NCBI GenBank assembly: GCA_965644495.1
Contig: CBFFSA010000002.1
Coordinates: 1,054,001 to 1,118,000 of the forward strand
Source of the DNA: Perkinsela sp. CCAP 1560/9
Lineage: Eukaryota; Protista; Euglenozoa: Kinetoplastea
Length of the DNA stretch: 64,000 nt
Direction of reading: 5' to 3'
In this document: positions 11,243-57,706 of the stretch, piece after piece
Layout: each line of letters starts with the position of its first letter
Position numbering within the stretch: position 1 is the stretch's first letter
Made by a program: the position numbers and the translations under genes
The notes under the pieces: generated by a model
The model's database searches: none
Told to the model about the DNA's origin: nothing
The model's input: the letters and a program-made list of their open reading frames with translations, nothing else

Positions 11243-11641
11243 ATCAAAATCGGGTCCGGGTGATAGGTGGGGGCTTGAAGGGGTGCAAAGGGGTGAGATC
11301 GCGCCTTGAGTGCAAAAGCTTCCTCGCTTGTTTTCCATTCATGTACGATACAGTAAAAATAACCTAGATAACGTAATACGAATGTAATGTATTATTGAAA
11401 ATCCGAATCTTCCCGTGTGGAAATCCTAAAAATCTTGTCCAGTGAGAAACGGTTAGAGTTTCAGTCCTTTACAATTGTTTCAAAAGAGTCATATGAAAAA
11501 TAAATTCGCTCAACCACCTAGTAAATAAATTTTTATTAAACTCTCCCATAAGCTCCTTGTTTTCTGCAACACTTAGCCGCACCAACCTTGTTGGCAGTGA
11601 ATCTAACCCTGTTATGTGCTCAAGTCGATTGTTGTTTAACG

Positions 11642-12217
11642 TTGTTTATCATGCGCTCTTTGGCGCAGAGATAATCCCCTTAATGCGACGGCCGATATCA
11701 TCGGCACATAATCTGCCCACAACGGATGTCGCCAAAGGGGGTTCGACACGGACTCGGTCGGTAGAGGGGGTCCAGGCAACTCGCCCTCTCTTTACGCAGC
11801 CGGAGGGGCGTACTGCAACCGACTCGGTCCCAGTCGGTAGAGGTGGTCCAGGCAACTCACCACCTCTTTACGCAGCCGGAGGGGCGCACTGCAACCGACC
11901 GCTGCCTCGCGATTATGCGAGGCAGAGTCACGCCCAGTGGTCCTCAAGGGAGGCCACCATGGCGCATAGCTCCCGGGAAGAGACAGGCGCGAGAAGAAGA
12001 AAGCCGGGGAGGGAAGAAAACTCACTCAAGGAGTGAGCCGGGGAGGGGTGAAAAGTCGGAGGTACGTCCCCTACTTCCACGACAAGAGGGACAGTCCCTG
12101 CTAGCCGTCAGCCGGAAACGGGCATTTAAAAGGAAAATGTATGCCGTTTCCGGGAAAAGAAAGGAAGGGCTAGCAAAATGTACCAACAAGGTACAGAAAC
12201 TGTATCTTTATACAGTT
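11642..12217 (-). mobile_element. Candidate SL-RNA-derived SINE, copy 1
   Basis: SL RNA head, ~400-nt body with internal direct repeats, LINE-like hairpin tail ending GCATGATAAACAA. Clean insertion in an LRR CDS; second copy at 21849-22409. Confidence 0.75.
12051..12212 (-). ncRNA. Spliced-leader RNA sequence (exon lacking its first ~9 nt, plus intron)
   Basis: TATAAAGATACAGTTTCTGTACCTTGTTG|GTACA resembles the kinetoplastid SL exon and donor. TGTACC/GGTACA stem spans the donor. Further stems GCTAGCC/GGCTAGC and CCGGAAACGG/CCGTTTCCGG, then a T-run. No clear canonical Sm site. Confidence 0.8.
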
Positions 12218-13116
12218 CACTGCCATGGAAGGAGGAAGCCGACTTAAATCAATGCGACCAGTAAATTCATTCTGACTCAACATGAGCTCTGTCATCGAGT
12301 GTGGTAGTGAGCAAAGATTAAGAGAACCAAAGAGTTCGTTCTGAGAAACCGAAAACTCTGTGAGATTGAGCGGCAGAATGCTCAAATCAAGCGTGCTGGA
12401 AAATGAATTTCCCCATAAATATGCCTCCATTAGAGAACTAGGCAGATGTTGTGTAGCTAAGGAACCATTGAACTGGTTTGCAGCCAGATATAGAAATTTT
12501 AGTTCACGTGGAAGGACATCAAGGGGTAGTTCACCGGTCAAAAAGTTTTCAAAAGTATTCAGATCCAGAACCGATTGGGGCATGTACTTCCAATTTGGAG
12601 CTCCTCGAACTCTCCACCTTTGCCATTCAATATTTGTTACTTCTTCTGGTCTTTTCGAACCTTTACACTGAATCCCAGACCACATGCAAGCTGAGGTTGA
12701 CGAGCTCCATGATGGATCTGTATTCTTTAAGCCAGCTGCAAATCGAGAAAGTTCGATTTCCGGAGGAAAAAGACTTCCAAGCACTTTTCCTCGACGACTA
12801 ATGTATCCTTTAGAACACTGTACATTTGTTTGACTCAAATTTCTTGCTTCCGCTTTATTGTCTGCCATTGATATTACAAAATACGTTAAGAAAGTAAAAA
12901 AGTCTAATAATACAGCTTATTGTAAGACTTTGAAACTTTAACCTGGAAAAATAATTTTTGAAGTGCTTTGGTGTTTTAGGACGCCGGCCAAAGCGTGTAA
13001 GTATAAGTCTCATGTGTAGTAAGATTGAAAATCCCAACGAACAAGCCTTGTCCAGTAAGCGACCACTCGAGATCCTTTACAAAAAAAGGAACAAACTAAA
13101 AAATCGCACAAACAAT

Positions 13117-19920: not shown

Positions 19921-20153
19921 TGGTTTTACAAAAGAAACGATTGATTCATATTCGCGCACCTTAAGTACTTTAAAAATCATCTTGTTGCGAAACAAACAGA
20001 CATGTTGTCAAATGTATTCGTTTAACAATGTTTTCGAATCAAAAGAAATATGCATCAGCTAGACAATTGAAAATGCATGCATGTTGAATTCCACGTTTTC
20101 CTTTGCAATCAACCCACTCTAAGTGCTTTCTACGAAGCCCCGAGTCTTTCATT

Positions 20154-21230
20154 TCACCGCAAGTGATACATCCCACTTGGGGTCTGCAGTGCGGACACGT
20201 AGGTCCCGTTTTCTACATCTGGGGTGGACTCGATCCACTGTGTGGGGGTACGGCTGTAAGAACGGAAATAATTCCGCTCCGAGACGCGATACTCAAAATG
20301 ACACCGCCCATGGCGGTCACGAGCAGAGGCACTCTGGAACGGCATTCCACAGTGGTAACATCGTATCCCACGGCTGTCGTTTAAATGCGAAAGGGTCGCA
20401 TGTAACTTCTCCAGAGGGTGGGAATGTGTATTTCCCGTACCTTCGGACAGTAAATTATCCAAATTTATCGGGTCTGTCAATTTGTCCCCCTTTCTTCCCT
20501 CCTGGGCTGACCCTGACGAGGAAGCCGCTTCCCCCTCCCTGGAGATTTCGTTTGCGTACACTATCCGGACGACAGAAGAGGATTCCGCTCCTGTCTTTTC
20601 CAGTTTCTCTTGCTGCTGTTGTTGCTGTAAGGGTTTCAATGTCTTCTTTGTCACCTCCGTAAGACACTGTCGGAACACCTCGGAGAGCCTTGAGCGGACC
20701 TCACCGGGGAGAATCCCATCACTCCACCACGCACGGAGTAAATCCATAAAAGGGAGAAGACAAAGTAATAAGAGAGAGTGTGGTGAAAAAATGGCTGTTT
20801 CTTTTTGTGTTCCAGAAAGCGGCAAACTCGAAAGCAACGCTGTGAGCGTCTCGTAGAGTCGAACCGGGAGAAGCTCATGGAGCCCGTGGTGCAGGGTTTG
20901 ATTAGCTTGGAGCCTCATGTCGTGGGGTAGGGGTAGGGGAGCTGTTTCCCGGGAAGACGTCTCGGAAAGGGTTTGGAGCCATGGTGAACGGAGAACACCA
21001 TCGACGAGACACCAACCGAACCAGTTTGAGGGAAGAGTAAACTCAGGTGGGGGCCGAGAAGGTCGTCGTAGGAGACCGGAGAGCGTCTGGAGTACAGCAT
21101 GGGTGTGACCTTGCAGACAGAGGTCCTCGAGGTGGAGAAGGGCTGCGTGTACGTTGGCTTTGGTCGGTGGTAGGTTTCGAAACTCACGTTCCAGGGCGAC
21201 ACTACTGTTAAAGGGAAGGGGAAGATTCAT
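20154..21230 (-). CDS. PCF11: PCF11-like cleavage/polyadenylation factor
   Basis: C-terminal GIRCYHCGMPF..H...HF..R.Y..TPTQWIE resembles the PCF11 Zn finger. N-terminal helical CID-like region. Confidence 0.6.
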   Translation of the reverse strand: MNLPLPFNSSVALEREFRNLPPTKANVHAALLHLEDLCLQGHTHAVLQTLSGLLRRPSRPPPEFTLPSNWFGWCLVDGVLRSPWLQTLSETSSRETAPLPLPHDMRLQANQTLHHGLHELLPVRLYETLTALLSSLPLSGTQKETAIFSPHSLLLLCLLPFMDLLRAWWSDGILPGEVRSRLSEVFRQCLTEVTKKTLKPLQQQQQQEKLEKTGAESSSVVRIVYANEISREGEAASSSGSAQEGRKGDKLTDPINLDNLLSEGTGNTHSHPLEKLHATLSHLNDSRGIRCYHCGMPFQSASARDRHGRCHFEYRVSERNYFRSYSRTPTQWIESTPDVENGTYVSALQTPSGMYHLR

Positions 21231-21349
21231 CTAAAAAAACAGTTTAAAGTTTTATAGATTCATAAAAACAATAAACGAATGTTCCAGCGCGTGTAATATT
21301 TTTTAATCCTCCAACCAGTATACGTTAAAATCAAAAGGCAGTTCGAAAA

Positions 21350-21850
21350 ATGACTCCCGGGATCCCTCCTCCCCTCTCTGCTTCTTCTCCTAGGTCCTCT
21401 CGACACCGGTCGGTAACCCGAAGACCCCCACGTTCCATCTCTCCTCGGAGCCGCTCCCGGAACAGAGCTCGCACCCCTCAGGCGAATGCTCCTGCTCCGA
21501 TACTGAAGAAAGCGTCAACCGTCTCCTTTGCACCTTTCCCCCCGGCTAACCTCTCCTCTAAGCCCTTCTCCACCGTCACCCGCATGGGCGGTAGTGACAC
21601 TGTGGCCCGAGACGAAATGGACAGCGACGGCCCGCCGCCCGGTGAGCGGTCGTTATCCCTACCCACAATGGCACAGCAGTTCAAATCCATGGACGCTGTC
21701 CGCCTCAAGCTCCTTCCTGCCCGAACCGGCTCAAATCGCTTTTCCGCGGAGACAGGAAGATGCGCAGTCACCTTATGGCTGGCTGTGACCCTCAGCGCCG
21801 AACACGACGTAACATCAATGATGGAGAAAGAGGCCCGTGAACGTCGGTTT
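21350..21850 (+). other. Pro/Ser/Arg-rich truncated ORF, possibly the 5' part of the CRE element
   Basis: Plus strand and GC-rich like the CRE. Joins in frame (ERRF|TLEAVW) to the Zn-finger ORF if 21851-22413 is removed. Confidence 0.4.
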
Positions 21851-22409
21851 GTTTATCATGCGCTCTTTGGCGCAGAGATAATCCTCTTAATGCGACGGCC
21901 GATATCATCGGCACATAATCCGCCCACAATGGATGTCGCCAAAGGGGGTTCGACACGGACTCGGTCGGTAGAGGGGGTCCAGGCAACTCGCCCTCTCTTT
22001 ACGCAGCCGGAGGGGCGTACTGCAACCGACTCGGTCCCAGTCGGTAGAGGTGGTCCAGGAAACTCACCACCTCTTTACGCAGCCGGAGGGGCGCACTGCA
22101 ACCGACCGCTGCCTCGCGATAATGCGAGGCAGAGTCACGCCCAGTGGTCCTCAAGGGAGGCCACCATGGCGCATAGCTCCCGGGAAGAGACAGGCGCGAG
22201 AAGAAGAAAGCCGGGGAGGGAAGAAAACTCACTCAAGGAGTGAGCCGGGGAGGGGTGAAAAGTCGGAAGTACGTCCCCTACTTCCACGACAAAGAGGGAC
22301 AGTCCCTGCTAGCCGTCAGCCGGAAACGGGCATTTAAAAGGAAAATGTATGCCCGTTTCCGGGAAAAGAAAGGAAGGGCTAGCAAAATGTACCAACAAGG
22401 TACAGAAAC
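21849..22409 (-). mobile_element. Candidate SL-RNA-derived SINE, copy 2 (exon remainder at 26262-26283)
   Basis: About 8 differences from copy 1 over ~560 nt. Same 3' boundary in an unrelated flank. Confidence 0.75.
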
Positions 22410-25400
22410 CTTTACACTCGAAGCCGTTTGGACGCTGCACGACACCCACAAGTCCATCGAGGAGCGTATCTATCTCATTAATGAAGGGTGTCTGGTTTGC
22501 TCCGAATGCGGCATTACGCAGCCGCATATTGTCTCCCTCCAGGCGCATCGCATCAAGGTGCACGGGCCGAAACGCCTAAGGGCTGCGTCACGGGTCCTGC
22601 TTCGGGAACACTCCCCGGAAGCCCTCAGGATCAAGGCCGATCGCTTCTCCTCCTTCATGGCTCTATATGAGTTCTGCACGATGGAGGCCCACCTCCAAAG
22701 GGCACAGGCGAGTGCGATGGCTGGAGGCCCACCCTGGCCCCAGCCCACCTTTCGTTCTCCCCCTCATCCCACACCTTTCCCTGGGATAGCGACGAAGCTA
22801 ATTCCCTCGCAGGCTACACCTGCACCGCCAATCAATCCCCAGGTCGACTCTGTTTCAGAACCCTTCAAGATCCTACTCGATCTCGGGCCGGAGCGAGCCG
22901 GATATGCCACTATCCCCTGCCCCCCGGACTCCTCTTTCCAAGCTTTCCTCGGCACAGTGGGGAACACTTTAGGGGTCCCTGGGGAAAATCTCCTCCTCAA
23001 AGACAGTGCTGGCGAAACCACCCCTATCACAGATCGGGAGGGCCTAGATCGCGCTCAACGAGTAGCGGTCAGCCTGTCCCTACCCCCGTAACAACGAGGC
23101 GGCCGTTATTTGGGTGTACGATGGGTCCATGCACGGGTTCATTAATGCCCCCGGACTACAGGCGGCCCACAACATCCCGGCCGGTCTGAGTGAGATTCTC
23201 GGTATTCCCCCAGTGCTGGCTGGAGCTTGGAAACCTCGTGAATACGAGGAGGGTGTGCTATGGTGTTTCCTCCCTACAGAAACCCTAGTCAGCGAAACGG
23301 GATGGACCGCCCGGGTTGTCAAATGCAATCTACGCAGGGGATGCATCGGGGCAAACCCTGGCCCCAGACACAAGAACCGAGAGTCGCTGACCTCATCCGC
23401 CCCCCAGCCCCGGCAGGCACCGAGCGAGACTCCGAGTGCCCTCCTCCAGGAGCCCGACACCCCTTCCCCCAGCAGGGAAGGAACTATCATGGAAGGAATC
23501 GAGGCTGTGACCTCACCGCAACGCCCTCCTTTCCATGCATCTTCCTCCCATTCTCCGCCTCCGTACTCCCACCGCGCAGGGACGGACCCCCCCGACATGG
23601 CCCCCAGCGCCACGCCCCCTCATACCCAAGGCGCGGTCACTGAGCAGGGTAACGTCACGCCTTACCCGGACAGCCTAGCCCAGCTCCTCGATAGGGGCTC
23701 ACTACGTAAACTGTACGCAATCCAATGCCCCGCGTGGAAAGACTACATTAAGTCTATCTGTAGCGACTTCTTGGGGAAGTCGCAGGAAGGGAAGACCAAA
23801 ATCGCCTGGGATCTTCTTCTCGGGGTTAAACGGTTCCTGTTTTTCCCCGAGGACAAGCTGTCCCAGAGGTAGTTGGCGAGGGAGTTACGGAAACGGGCTC
23901 ACCTAGAGGGGTCGGAATCCATCGCTCCAACTCCCCTCCTCACCAACAGTTTCCCCCGTTCTGTTATCAAACGGGTTACCGAGCTGATCCGGGCGGGGGC
24001 TTTCTCGAGGGCGGCTAAAATCTTGGAAGCCCCCCTCGATCCGCCGGCAAACCCGGCTACAGCGGGGGAACAGGTGAAACGCCTCCACCCTACGGGAGGT
24101 CCCCCAAGTTCGTCCCCCAAGTTCGTCCATGACAAGGAAAGTCATGGACCCCTCCCGTCGGCGGCAGATGTTGTCCGTAAGGCAACTAGCCTTGCGCCGC
24201 TTAGACCGCCAGGCCCGTCCAGATGGACCAAAGAACTCCTGGTCCCCATCCTCCAGGAGGATGACCCGAGGGACGTGGTCACTTGGATCATCCAAGGGAT
24301 CCTCACGAACTCCCTCCCTCCCACGATGAGGGATTTCCTCGCGGGAGCCAACCTCAAGCTCTTTAACAAGCCTGGGGCCCCGGTGGGACATCACTCCTCG
24401 TACAGGCCCATTGCCATGGGGGAGGTCATCCTGAAGCTCGCGGATCTACTAGCCCTTGAACAGGTCAGAGACCACCTCCCAGCTGTGTTTCAGGGCCTCC
24501 AATTCGGAGCCCAATACACTCAAGGATGCGAGCAAGTCGTGTATGAAGTGAGAGATCACTTCCGCGACAGACCCGATGAGGTGATCGTGGCGGTCGACCT
24601 GGAAAATGCTTTTAACAGCATTTCCCGCGCGGCCATTTTCCGAGCCTTGAAAAGGTACCAGAACCTTTTCCCTATGATCGGGATTTCCCTTTTCGGGTAC
24701 GGGACCCCTAGCAAGATCCACCTGGGGGAGGGGATTGCCGTCCCTAGCTCCCGGGGGGTGAAACAAGGGGACCCGATGGCGCCCATCCTTTTTGCCTTAG
24801 GGATACAGGGCGCCATCTCGGCCGTGGCGGCTAAATACTCTGGCTGTCTAAAGCTATGGGCATATCTGGATGATATAACCATAGACGCGGAGCCCGGGGT
24901 GTGCGTAAATGCCCTTGGCTCCATGGAAGCGGAGATCAAGTTTTTGGGCTTAAAGGTCAACACGGCCAAGTGCATGGTGGCTACCCGCCACCCGGACTTG
25001 TACTCGGTCTTCTCGGGGAGCAGGATGCAACATGCTCCGGGGGGGTTCAAGCTTCTGGGGGCGTATATTGGCGCCACGGAAGCAGTTGAAGAGGGATAGG
25101 TCCTATCGAAGGTTCCCAAGGTCACAAACTTCTTGGGTAAGCTGAAGGACTTACCCAGACAGTGCGCCCTTCCCCTTCTTCGCCTATTCGGGAGCCCCCG
25201 GTGGAACTACATAGTTCGTATGCATGAACCGGGGGTGACCAAAAAGGCAAACCTTCAGGTAGACGCGGCCATCACCGCATGCTCCTAAACCTTAATCGGG
25301 GGGATGGGTGCAATAGGAACGACGCCGTTCGCAAACAAACTTTTTACGGCGGACTTCCTGGGCACCATCCCCTTCGAAGACAAGGCGGAGGACATGCAGG

Positions 25401-26261
25401 CCAAAGCCGTCAAGGCCTTACAAGGCCGACCCCCTGGCACCCCAGCCAGGGAGCAGCGACGTGCTTATGGGGCGGCGGCTATGGACAAGGCACCGTCGGC
25501 CACGCATCTGGTCTGCATGCGACAGATTCAGAACACCCACTCCACCAAGTGGATGAACGCGTGGCCGAACAGGCCGGAGTACTACATGCGGGATCCCGAA
25601 TGGGAGACCGCCGCTAGGCTCCGGTACATGGTGGCCCCCACCTCCGAACCTGAGATCCAATGTGTGTGTGGCGCAGCCCTCAAAAACGAGGATTTCTACG
25701 TCCATGCCATGGATTGCAAAAAGGTTCGTAACAAGACTCAGGCCTCTCGCCATAAGGGGGTTAAGGAAACCTTCAGGAACCTACTGATCCAGTACGGATT
25801 CTCCCCGGACCTAGTCGAACCTAGGTTCGACAACGGGCGGGGACCGGACATCTGTTTCCTTTTGGGGCGGAAGCTCGTCCTCGTAGACGTGACGGTGGTG
25901 AACCCACTGGCACCGTCTTATGTGGACAAGGAGGCAGCAGACTCCTCCTTCACCGTGAGACAGGCCGAACGCCTCAAAAGGCGTACTCACGAAGAAATGG
26001 CGGGGGCCAGGGAGATGGACTTCTTCCCGCTGGCCTTCACCACTTACGGTGTCCCCGGCCCCGAGACCCTCCAGTTTCTTAAACTGGTTGCTCGAAAGGC
26101 CACCGGAGAAAAGAATGGTTGCCTCAGCCACTTCATCATGGCAATTGGGGTAGCCATCCAAAAGGGGAACGCCCAGATAGCGCACGCCGCGGTACGAAAT
26201 TGGTACCGGCGGGGCGTGCGCTAACTGGGCAACGGTGAGGAGGAAAAAAGAACAAAAAAAA
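22410..26261 (+). mobile_element. CRE-clade (SLACS/CZAR/CRE-like) non-LTR retrotransposon, degenerate
   Basis: C2H2 finger CSEC..H....H; RT motifs YRPIAMGE, DLENAFNSISR, GVKQGDP, YLDD; CCHC plus RLE (RHKG, PDI, VDVTV, FFPLAFTTYG). A-rich tail followed by antisense SL exon. In-frame stops at ~23870, 25097 and 25286, plus a frameshift. Confidence 0.9.
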
Positions 26262-26290
26262 ACAGAAACTGTATCTTTATAGCTGTATCT

Positions 26291-26725
26291 TTATGCTTCG
26301 CTCAGTGCACCAGGAAGATTATGTGTACATAGTGGACCACTGTGCATGTTTGAACCTAGATATATAGACTTCAGGTTATGTGGAAGAAAATCAAGTGGAA
26401 GTTCACCCGTTAAAAAATTGGCAAACATATTTAGATGCTGCAACGACTGAGGTATGTATTTCCAACCGGGGGTTCCTTGAAGTTGAAGTCGCTGCCATTG
26501 AATGTGCGGTACATCGTCTGGTCTAGTCGAATCTTTACACTGAATTCCAGACCACATGCAACCCGGAGTTGATGAGTTCCACGTTGGATTAATGTTCTTT
26601 AAACCTTCTGTAAATCGAGAAAGTTCAATTTCTGGGGGAAATGAACCAGATACTTTTCCGCGACGACGGCTGTAGCTCTCGGCATCTTTCTGCTTTATAT
26701 GCGTTTTTGCGACTTGATCGTCCAT
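26291..26725 (-). pseudogene. 3'-truncated LRR gene fused to SL sequence
   Basis: RRGKV subfamily. Ends at HNLPGALSEA, directly abutting duplicated SL exon sequence; C-terminal half absent. Confidence 0.8.
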
Positions 26726-35514: not shown

Positions 35515-37680
35515 TTTTTGTTTATCATGCAGTATGACTGCAGAGATTGTCACCTAAGAAAATACACGTAAATCATGTATAAACCCCGCACAAAACGGGT
35601 TTCCCTTAAGCTTTTCATCATCGCTATATGCTGGCTTCCGTCCAGCTCGGGTTATCGCGGTTTTGAAAAATCGCGAAACTTCCTCGTATTGCTCTTTTGA
35701 CAAGCTTCTGTCGACATTGCGAGGCGGTGGCCTTGTTACCTCCGAAAAGTGAGTTGAGCGCTCGCGTAGAGGAGTTGAGCTTCCCTCTGGCCCCCACTTC
35801 GATGACAAGAAGAAAGGTTGCCGGGTTAGTCATTTTCCTTTCGAGAAACAGATTCCCGTACTTCCGCACTTTTCATGTGAGGATAAAAAGTTTTCCTCCC
35901 ACGGAGAAGTGAGCTCAAGTATGAACTCAGTACCATTATGTAGCTTGATCCACCCATCAAGTCTAAGGGCCGTGTCCTGTTGACTTAGCCATGTTGGGGG
36001 GTTTCGGTAAAGAGAAAGATCAAAGTGGTACTGCGCTGTTTCTGGGGATGCTCTTACGGCATCTGCGATAGCGTGGAGTATAAGATCATGGCGGAACGTG
36101 TAGCGGCCCTGTTCAAGGGCCACCTTGCACCCTGTGAGGACATGTCGAACTGTCTGCACCTCCTCATTGCAAATGGGACACTTTGTGTCCGTGTGCGTAC
36201 TTAGACCCCAACGACGCAGTGCTGAACGAGTAGGTAGTGGTGTTTGGGTCAACACAGATGCAGTAAACCGGGAGAGTGCCTCACTGTTGATGTTACATAC
36301 CGCAACAGCAAAGTCTTTCGCAAGTTCGTCCTCAGTGGCCATACGGAACCACTGTGCCGCTATGGGAGCCCGTCGTTGCAGGGATTCGGAAAGGTGTCGC
36401 TCGTATTCACTCTCAATGAACCGCCGTGTCGCCACACGGTCTTCTCGTCGGTCGTACAGTTCAACTACTGGTTGGACGTGTCCCGTTGAGCGCTTGTGCA
36501 GTTCCCTGCGGATGCGGTGTCTTAAAGCCTGTTGCACAGCCGGGTCACGTGATTTCTGCATTTGCTCGACCAGTGTACTCCTGCAGAGTATCCACAGCTT
36601 TGAGAAACTAGTTAAGGCCCACCCCCGCTCAGAATAGAGAAGTTCGCTGGTTGCAGTTTTGGCCATATTCACCCATTTCCGAATGTGTGTAGTCGCAAGC
36701 TTTTGCAGCCGCAGGATGAAATTCAGTGTGATTCCCGGATTTACCGTCAGAACGTAGCGTAGACGGGAAATAATGACGTTATTGTAGACCCAGAGGCGGG
36801 CGGGCGTATCCATGGCACTTTCAGATACGTTGGTAAGCCAGTGGCGTAGTTGTGTACGGAGACTCTTGAACAACACTTTCCCTTGTTGGGCTCCAGGCGC
36901 TAGCGTCATGCCCAGAAACTGACTGCCTTTGTCGCAAACGTGGGGTATGCTTTCGCCGCCGGCACGGATGTGCGGTCTGTGGGTTTTGTATCCTCCATCC
37001 GCTACAGCCATATACTGAAGCCGACATTTCTGTACATTTAGCCGCATGCCTAATCTGGCGAGCACCTTTACCAGGGCGTTAGTAACATGCTGCATTTCTT
37101 CGGGTGATTTGGTAATGACGGCAAGGTCGTCCGCAAACGCCTTAAGGAATGAATCTTGCCCGCCCCATGTGATGCCATATCCTGGAAAGCTGGATCGAAG
37201 GTACCTTAAAACTACCTCCATCGCAAGGTTGAATAGCACAGGAGATAGGGTGTCGCCTTGAAGAACGCCTCGTTCAACGGGAATGTGGTTAGTCAACCCC
37301 TCAGCACACTTGACTCGGAGAGAAGCACTGGTATAGAGGGAGTGAACATATTCGATGATAATCGGCGACACCTTTGCCCATTGTAATACTTGGAAGAGGA
37401 TCGAGTGTGGAAGAGAACCAAAGGCGTTTTTCAGGTCGAATTGACCCAAGCAGTATTGCCGTTTGTGCTGCCTCTGAAAATCCAGCAGTTTACAAAGCGC
37501 TTGCGTGTGTTCAATGGTTCCATTGACATTGGGGAGAAAGCCTTTTTGTATGGTCGTGTCGATGATCCCTGTGCTGTCAGCGTGACTCAGAAGTTTGTGT
37601 CCTATGATTGAGTGGAGTAGCTTCCCCAGACAGCTGGTCAGGCTGATAGGGCGCCAGTTCGACAGTTTATCACACAAATT
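35515..37680 (-). mobile_element. HERO/NeSL-like RLE non-LTR retrotransposon, 5'-truncated
   Basis: RT motifs WRPISL, QKGF, DLKNAFGS, GVLQGDTLSP, FADD; CCHC KCPIC..HVLTGC; RHD, LELTSPWEEN, EVGARG. One frameshift near 35870; hairpin tail. Confidence 0.9.
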
Positions 37681-57069: not shown

Positions 57070-57520
57070 TGCATTTTGCAGATCTCAACATAAAGACTTT
57101 GCGCGTGAAGAAATGAGACAAAAAGAAACGAATATGTATATTTTAGAGAGAGATTACCATTTTGTCACCTTTTCTCCGTTACTCGCCACACAAGCTTTGA
57201 GGCGAGCATCGAAGCTCAAAACCGAATCATAAATATAACCTTGAGACAATTTACGCCAAGCTTTACGTACGCTTTTTATGAGATCTTCTTTATTTGTCGG
57301 ATTGTATTCATCTACAAGACTTTGTACCATGCTCCACACGTTTTCTATTGGTGAGAGATCGGGGGAGTTAGGCGGCCAATTTTTCAATAATTTCATTTTG
57401 TTGTCGTCAAGGTACGCTTCTGTTTCCTTCGCAGTGTGAGGTGTTGCCCCATTTTGCTGAAAAATACAGTTTGGGGTGAATGATACTTTTTTTAATGTTT
57501 TAATGTACGAAACACATGTA
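57070..57520 (-). mobile_element. Tc1/mariner transposase 3' relic
   Basis: FQQNGATPHTA..WPPNSPDLSPIENVW..NGEKVTKW. Confidence 0.85.
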
Positions 57521-57524
57521 AAAA

Positions 57525-57706
57525 ACGCATGTATGTGTGCACACGTCGGGCACAGCCGGTGGGAGGGGGAGGGTGGTTCGAACTCCGAGCCACAGTATGC
57601 ACAGAACAATAGACCCTTGAGGGGGAGTTCTGCCATGGGGGGAGAGATTAAAGAAGGAAAGGACAAAATAAGTCAACAAGGTACAGAAACCATATCTTTA
57701 TCGTTA
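57525..57706 (-). pseudogene. SL-capped mRNA 5' fragment encoding an RPA12-like Zn ribbon
   Basis: TAACGATAAAGATATGGTTTCTGTACCTTGTTG, 37-nt UTR, ATG at 57636: MAELPLKGLLFCAYCGSEFEPPSPSHRLCPTCAH. Product identity is tentative. Confidence 0.7.

Follow-up and report, generated by a model that had tools for sequence, protein, structure and literature searches.

A dispersed SINE-like retroposon with a spliced-leader fragment at its 5' end in Perkinsela sp. CCAP 1560/9

The window analysed here, a 64,000-nt stretch of the Perkinsela sp. CCAP 1560/9 genome, contains an LRR gene on the minus strand that is interrupted by a non-coding unit of 570 nt. This unit begins with a piece of the spliced-leader (SL) exon and ends in a hairpin-bearing tail, and a second copy of it lies within a LINE of the opposite orientation. 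We refer to it as a SINE. The features of the interrupted gene and of the two copies are the following:

12218-12868, minus strand: upstream part of the interrupted LRR gene, based on the ORF list, a weak Pfam LRRNT_2 match and the empty-site contig
12212-12217, minus strand: 5' junction with six additional bases (AACTGT) that neither the empty site nor the flank contains
11642-12211, minus strand: SINE copy 1, a non-coding member of subfamily A, 570 nt long, with ~16 further dispersed copies that are 97-100% identical
12184-12211, minus strand: 28-nt SINE head, covering SL exon nt 11-38 without any difference from the true SL gene
12101-12183, minus strand: 5' structured domain of the SINE body, in which, according to single-sequence folds, a GGUACA arm closes a hairpin with the leader and a long hairpin follows
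11744-11899, minus strand: two tandem 76-nt repeats in the SINE body, detected as self-matches
11642-11672, minus strand: SINE 3' tail, consisting of ATCTCTGC, a 5-bp hairpin and GCATGATAAACAA, constant in all subfamily A copies
11400-11641, minus strand: downstream part of the interrupted LRR gene, where the frame resumes as L-N-N-N-R-L-E-H after the insert
21849-22414, minus strand: SINE copy 2, delimited by alignment to copy 1 (locus L009), antisense in a broken plus-strand LINE whose RT ORF lies at 23873-25099 on the plus strand

Read on the minus strand from 12217 to 11642, the sequence runs through the six junction bases, ATAAAGATACAGTTTCTGTACCTTGTTG, a GC-rich body and the terminal ...ATCTCTGCGCCAAAGAGCGCATGATAAACAA. 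The upstream ORF (12170-12868) extends into copy 1. An empty site for this copy, of the kind that an earlier, sequence-only reading of the locus suggested looking for, was found in the public run X2, where a contig joins position 11639 to position 12218 through six other letters. The empty site is in frame, and the LRR repeat is restored (...M-A-V-L-S-L-N-N-N-R-L...). The presence of these six letters indicates that the target lost 6 nt upon insertion of copy 1. That reading was thus correct in stating that an LRR ORF is interrupted, although the loss amounts to two codons and not to about one. Copy 1 shows no target-site duplication; its junctions display the 6-nt deletion together with the extra bases. 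A small target deletion and extra junction bases are usual for R2-type insertion. The motif N-x-[LF]-x-G was found downstream of the insert, starting 10-13 nt away, in 11-12 out of 29 SINE copies, and a LINE insertion in the window occupies the same LRR register and is likewise followed by N-x-[LF]-x-G. SINE and LINE insertions are located approximately 10-13 nt upstream of the Asn codon in the LRR motif N-x-L-x-G.

The two copies in the window are ~98.6% identical and share the 3' end ...GCATGATAAACAA in unrelated flanks. Copy 2 begins at SL nt 12, hence is not 5'-truncated, and carries a 5-nt deletion inside the leader. A search of the 21-Mb assembly retrieved 47 SINE matches distributed over many contigs, 40 of them near full length, and pattern counts across the genome gave 76 SINE-type tails and ~70 heads. 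The 3' end falls on an identical base in every copy. The 5' start corresponds to one leader base in nearly all of them, behind a few bases that are either unrelated or duplicated from the flank. Two subfamilies were observed: A, with 97-100% identity to copy 1 and the terminal sequence GATAAACAA, and B, with ~87% identity to copy 1 and the terminal sequence GAACATCAA. Their alignment revealed a mosaic, in which the central ~300 nt (columns 170-470) are near-identical, whereas the 5' and 3' domains (columns 38-170 and 470-560) have diverged. At two loci, L017 and L018, an A-type 5' domain is joined to a B-type tail, suggesting modular exchange between element RNAs. The tandem repeat of the body (query coordinates 319-398 versus 395-474, 89% identity) is present in every copy.

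The ORF list contains no ORF belonging to the unit, and a tRNA scan detected no tRNA in it. Rfam searches, performed with the whole window at the gathering threshold and with the unit in E-value mode, returned no relevant family, ribozyme, SL or R2 element. Nor does the unit have a Pol III small-RNA head (tRNA, 7SL or 5S) with an internal promoter, its head being SL exon nt 11-38. The SINE is a real, recently active, non-coding and dispersed retroposon. Most of the anatomy proposed by the sequence-only reading is borne out by these results: a ~570-nt non-coding unit with a common 3' boundary, a head that lacks the first nucleotides of the SL exon and otherwise matches it exactly, and a repeat-containing body. 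The genome-wide search further showed that the unit is not confined to the two copies known to that reading.

The LINE-type hairpin tail is likewise confirmed, and the proposed mobilisation of a non-autonomous element by a putative RLE (R2/NeSL-like) LINE is supported by the shared tail and the LRR register. The candidate partner is the LINE of the window mentioned above, for which we distinguish:

35518-37677, minus strand: 3' half of the candidate partner LINE, with an R2-like RT ORF, a frameshifted C-terminus, a 3' UTR and the tail
35830-37677, minus strand: R2-like RT ORF of this LINE, with Pfam RVT_1 and zf-RVT matches
35518-35547, minus strand: LINE tail, ATCTCTGCAGTCATACTGCATGATAAACAA, built on the same frame as the SINE tail

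Among solved proteins, the best relatives of its RT are R2 proteins (E=4e-26), and a putative RLE motif was read by eye in the frameshifted C-terminus. The 3' end at 35518 consists, as in the SINE, of ATCTCTGC, a 5-bp hairpin and GCATGATAAACAA; the last 13 nt equal those of subfamily A, and the sequence of the hairpin stem differs between the two tails. The SINE thus shares its 3' end with an autonomous LINE over ~30-40 nt, and the similarity between both elements is confined to this stretch. An intact copy of the LINE, 98% identical, is located at C1:2073388-2078400 and combines a 1624-aa frame with a head of SL nt 11-38 and the same tail. Tail variants are found on other LINE lineages, with the subfamily B type at C7:465168. 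The intact LINE copies, as well as C7:465168, C8:577320 and C19:15568, are known through pattern matches only. Two other candidates were discarded. The LINE at C39 (L031/L034) is SL-headed but belongs to another family and has a different tail. A cluster with subfamily B type tails at C1:392.5-412.4 kb is not a LINE but a ~5.2-kb segmental repeat with non-coding elements. In this cluster (L043 and L044, C1:392500-412400), which comprises ~5.2-kb segmental tandem repeats and contains a 200-N gap, each element has its final ~107 nt in common with SINE subfamily B; a spacer of 20 nt and then a partial leader, TTTCTGTACCTTGTT, come after it.

The true SL exon comprises 38 nt, namely AACTTTAACG plus the 28 nt of the SINE head, and ends in ...GTTG. 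The 19-mer at its 3' end has 489 exact copies in the genome, with many unrelated sequences downstream. The joins of these relics fall exactly at the end of the SL exon, including those onto LINE 5' UTRs. One SL-headed LINE 5' UTR, AATTATTT..., lies at C39 ahead of a 1191-aa ORF and a second type reads ATTTGTACTAAC...; further non-coding families are also among the partners. Leaders nested in leaders were found at C17:79165 and C2:1477508. Exact joins of the exon end to non-intron sequence, and the presence of the SL on many unrelated sequences, are the features by which relict SLs are recognised, and both were found here. As the exon end of the relics abuts many unrelated sequences, the SINE head is best read as mature, spliced SL that was part of a retroposed RNA. 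By analogy, the relic pattern is the signature of reverse-transcribed trans-spliced RNA. In other families, 349 relics have a leader that goes back to nt 9-10 and in most cases to nt 3, and A-runs often precede them. These relics extend past nt 11, which indicates that the nt-11 start is a property of the hairpin-tailed families.

We consider it likely that R2-like LINEs are parasitised by the unit, a non-autonomous retroposon of SINE type whose head derives from the mature SL on a trans-spliced template. In the proposed mechanism, the LINE protein, equipped with RT and a putative restriction-like endonuclease, would recognise the tail and nick the LRR site, where the SINE RNA would be copied by target-primed reverse transcription. 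The head would originate from the mature leader on the trans-spliced template RNA, not from the SL RNA gene, and the LINEs and hundreds of other retrocopies in the genome would have gained their heads in the same way. The first 10 nt of the leader would usually not be kept by the R2-like machinery. The leader may be regained at every cycle or may be carried as a fixed 5' module.

Some copies carry a longer leader. The complete SL (nt 1-38) is present with two mismatches at L015 and with three at C8:577320, SL nt 3-38 are found at C19:15568, and L001 is also among the copies with a longer or full SL with errors. Remnants of the form AACT occur in L006 and in copy 1, where the first four of the junction bases AACTGT equal SL nt 1-4. 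Given that rare copies keep SL nt 1-10 with errors, templates can apparently carry, or acquire, a fuller SL. These leaders fit templates with a full leader, the first 10 nt of which are usually lost by the R2-like machinery, but they could also stem from occasional RT jumps onto another SL-bearing RNA. Their garbled nt 1-10 are compatible with RT difficulties near the 5' end, in line with the suggestion of the sequence-only reading that the missing nucleotides would fit RT arrest near the modified cap.

Longer leaders are harder to reconcile with the possibility that the 28-nt head is inherited as a fixed 5' module without renewal in each cycle, an alternative that we regard as unlikely, yet deserving serious weight. 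Read-through transcripts would in that case be processed, or transcription would begin, exactly at SL nt 11, and the module would have the role of a 5' handle, comparable to Pr77 in trypanosomatid retroposons or to the 5' RNA that the R2 protein binds. A template starting at nt 11 cannot encode the SL nt 1-10 seen in several copies without a jump to another RNA, and neither a ribozyme nor a known RNA family was detected in the Rfam searches. The sharp nt-11 start in most of the 29 copies and in the intact LINE copy, in contrast with the ~349 relics of other families described above, nevertheless argues for such a module. So do the conserved helix that includes the head and the stuttered partial heads upstream of some copies, which are expected with a template ending at nt 11. 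It is further favoured by the outcome of a pattern search of the assembly, which identified no AG-acceptor or SL-less source locus for the body; the pattern of a non-T base followed by GGTACATTTT[GC]C gave only two matches, both unrelated to the family. The same outcome weighs against our preferred reading, in which the body should have a source with an acceptor at the junction.

Returning to a head acquired from the mature leader, a further proposal, which we find doubtful, is that R2/CRE-like LINEs and SINEs use the host SL as their own 5' end, with read-through transcripts being re-leadered at the relic end. In Perkinsela, some SL-like pieces adjoin retrotransposons and TG 'acceptors' are frequent (PMC5601477). 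The last two bases of the relic are TG, and this dinucleotide could, by analogy, be a re-used acceptor, which would turn any copy into a possible source furnished with a host cap. CRE, SLACS and CZAR insert between nt 11 and 12 of the 39-nt SL exon (PMC5814959, PMC12278014). The 28 nt downstream of that insertion point equal the head length found here, a coincidence to be taken as a lead only. The sharp 28-nt boundary would then correspond to the cut position of these elements, and it could stem from an action of the element's own nuclease or protein on the leader during integration.

The sequence-only reading had instead taken the unit for a descendant of the SL RNA gene, in which the exon, a GT donor and a diverged intron are fused to a LINE tail, and whose source would be unspliced SL RNA or an SL read-through master locus. 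We consider this quite improbable on the basis of the true SL gene, a 297-bp tandem pair at C1:661.3 kb. There, the exon is followed by the intron GTATGAGAAGCTTCG, the post-exon sequence being GTATGAGAAGCTTCGAACTC..., and the RNA folds into the canonical three-hairpin SL RNA. The locus (L032, C1:659500-663500), with its two 297-bp units, is the sole gene-like SL RNA locus in the assembly. Only seven loci carry the true SL intron, and the full exon with gene-like upstream sequence is restricted to the C1 pair; the others begin at nt 2-3 or are truncated and, therefore, look like retro-copies of unspliced SL RNA. The SL intron is also visible in the read data as a loose end at the exon boundary. 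A metagenome scan with the SL alone recovered one contig, the environmental Ga0316204_10168667 (L045), which contains a true SL gene with the same 38-nt exon and the same intron start. Both this gene and that of the assembly run into GTATGAGAAGCTTCGAAC after the exon, suggesting that a close relative of the organism was present in that sample.

The local alignment of the 259 nt that follow the exon with the SINE body scored 16, the mean of the shuffles being 18, and 283 out of 300 shuffles equalled or exceeded the observed score. Likewise, neither the intron nor the spacer showed similarity to the body. With no alignment above shuffles, the bases after the SINE leader are neither SL intron nor SL monomer. 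The comparison with the true SL array repeat, another check put forward in the sequence-only reading, ruled out that the unit is the array monomer, which is 297 bp long and matches it in the exon alone. Because the sequence after the leader differs from the SL intron, which is conserved in the environmental relative, the element does not appear to be built from unspliced SL RNA. The description of this region as GT donor, intron stem-loops and T-run consequently fails. An identical SL piece also heads LINEs and other retrocopies in which the next bases are not GT, at odds with an unspliced head. No SL-promoter master locus was found in the assembly: the upstream sequence of the full-SL copy at C8:577320 is unrelated and not SL-gene-like, and L015 lies inside an LRR gene.

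The SINE unit folds far better than shuffles (z -6.4), and two compensatory pair changes, A-U to C-G and U-A to C-G, distinguish subfamilies A and B in the 5' hairpin; both results count in favour of our preferred reading. Some features of the folds speak for descent from SL RNA: the leader UGUACC pairs with GGUACA, as it does in stem-loop I of the true SL RNA, and a second helix is formed by ACAGUUUC and the downstream GRRACUGU. The body also begins with GTA, as the intron does. The 6-bp TGTACC/GGTACA stem that had been taken to indicate a true SL RNA is indeed present, but the SL-RNA-like hairpin made by the GGTACA arm reflects mimicry or chance and does not testify to origin; the predicted leader/body helices recall stem-loop I by resemblance, not homology. 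Retro-copies of unspliced SL RNA do exist, at L033:1576-1700 (C2:801575), C1:410085, C20:10948, C25:23939 and C49:34390, containing the exon from nt 2-3 and the real intron. They show that genuine SL RNA has been reverse-transcribed in this genome, though in another element. In two of them, an A-rich linker is followed by a common element, GCGGAGGTGGCGGAG.... The Perkinsela SL gene has been described with a 38-bp exon and a 468-bp 'intron' (PMC5601477), close to the size of the SINE unit. A very old SL RNA origin of the body may be envisaged, given that it starts with GTA and pairs with the leader as the real intron start does.

Head-to-tail chains were also observed, either of a LINE tail followed by a SINE head (L018:1455-1510 and L020:1455-1510) or of a SINE tail followed by the next SL head (L011:2072-2115 and L022:2070-2080), which suggests template jumping or insertion into tails. 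The commonness of these chains (L018, L020, L011, L022) and the GTA microhomology between the starts of body and intron would suit a chimera, in which the LINE RT, copying an unrelated structured RNA, jumped onto SL RNA or the 5' end of an mRNA and the fused product became the amplifying template, as in U6-L1 chimeras. This is very unlikely: like every other SL-headed family, the SINE is joined precisely to the end of the exon, which splicing explains better than a jump does, and a jump into unspliced SL RNA should often keep intron bases.

A head gained from the mature SL finds partial parallels in known systems. In Perkinsela sp., a 38-nt SL exon has been reported, together with a single intact SL gene locus and over 500 SL-like pieces (PMC5601477, Supplementary Note 1.3), and the pieces were interpreted as SL genes in decay and as SL introns copied via cDNA (PMC5601477). 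Our observations agree with that report in the exon length, in the abundance of SL pieces beside a sole SL gene locus, in the pieces near retrotransposons and in the similar repeats in LRR-type proteins; the SL-headed LINE and SINE families, their tails and the LRR target are not described there. As in the relict SLs of dinoflagellates (PMC5585692, PMC12014239), a DNA copy of the SL lies 5' of reverse-transcribed trans-spliced RNA, and nested partial leaders occur in both. The dinoflagellate cases, ascribed to mRNA recycling, are cellular retrogenes, whereas here LINE and SINE families amplify in a kinetoplastid-type host, and in the R2-like families the final 28 nt of the leader are all that is left.

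The resemblance to R2 LINEs and SIDEs involves an RT that is closest to R2, site-specific insertion with loss of a few target nucleotides, additional and variable bases at the 5' junction, the absence of poly(A) and a short element that shares the 3' end structure of the LINE. Whereas R2 targets rDNA, the elements described here insert at one position of the codon register in a large family of LRR genes, and their 5' end is an SL piece instead of a ribozyme-processed co-transcript; unlike a SIDE, the SINE does not have an internally deleted version of the window LINE as its body. CRE, SLACS and CZAR are kinetoplastid RLE-type LINEs linked with the SL (PMC5814959, PMC12278014). They reside inside SL genes, whereas the present elements contain an SL piece themselves and are inserted in LRR genes or other DNA. 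Autonomous and non-autonomous retroposons that share a short 5' signature are known in ingi/RIME and L1Tc/NARTc, with Pr77 (PMC8190864, PMC5814959). However, Pr77 belongs to APE-type LINEs, which encode it themselves as a promoter and ribozyme, and the signature here is the host SL on putative RLE-type LINEs.

The elements described here constitute a retroelement family with host SL sequence as a constant 5' end, aimed at one codon register of a large LRR gene family. They connect the turnover of genes of a surface-type family with trans-splicing and with the site specificity of R2-type elements, and they make it testable whether an R2-like RT stops 10 nt short of the kinetoplastid cap structure.

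Several minor observations concern the SINE and the SL. A shorter relative of the unit appears in high-depth contigs of three runs, with joints at 11732-11918 and 11950-12010; in place of 185 nt of the unit, one of the 76-nt repeats among them, it has 26 different letters. The metagenome scan recovered no SINE head/body junction, no RNA run was found to contain the unit, the runs analysed being contigs throughout, and a literature search with the SL sequence gave no match. The leader part of the SINE has ~10 times the contig depth of the body, and the SL array may be collapsed or relics may be in excess. A LINE RT match is located at C1:663750, 2 kb from the SL gene locus. Within the window, two stacked partial SL heads, ATAAAGATACAGCT and ATAAAGATACAGTTTCTGT, occupy the usual LRR site at 26262-26294 on the minus strand and directly adjoin the A-rich 3' end of a plus-strand LINE (~20100-26262); a search for the remainder of the minus-strand element beside these heads did not find it. 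Another SL-headed retrocopy lies at 57154-57706 on the minus strand. Its SL-bearing part (57665-57706) contains SL nt 3-38 with two mismatches, followed by a short 5' UTR and a 170-aa ORF beginning MAELPLKGLLFCAYCGSEF....
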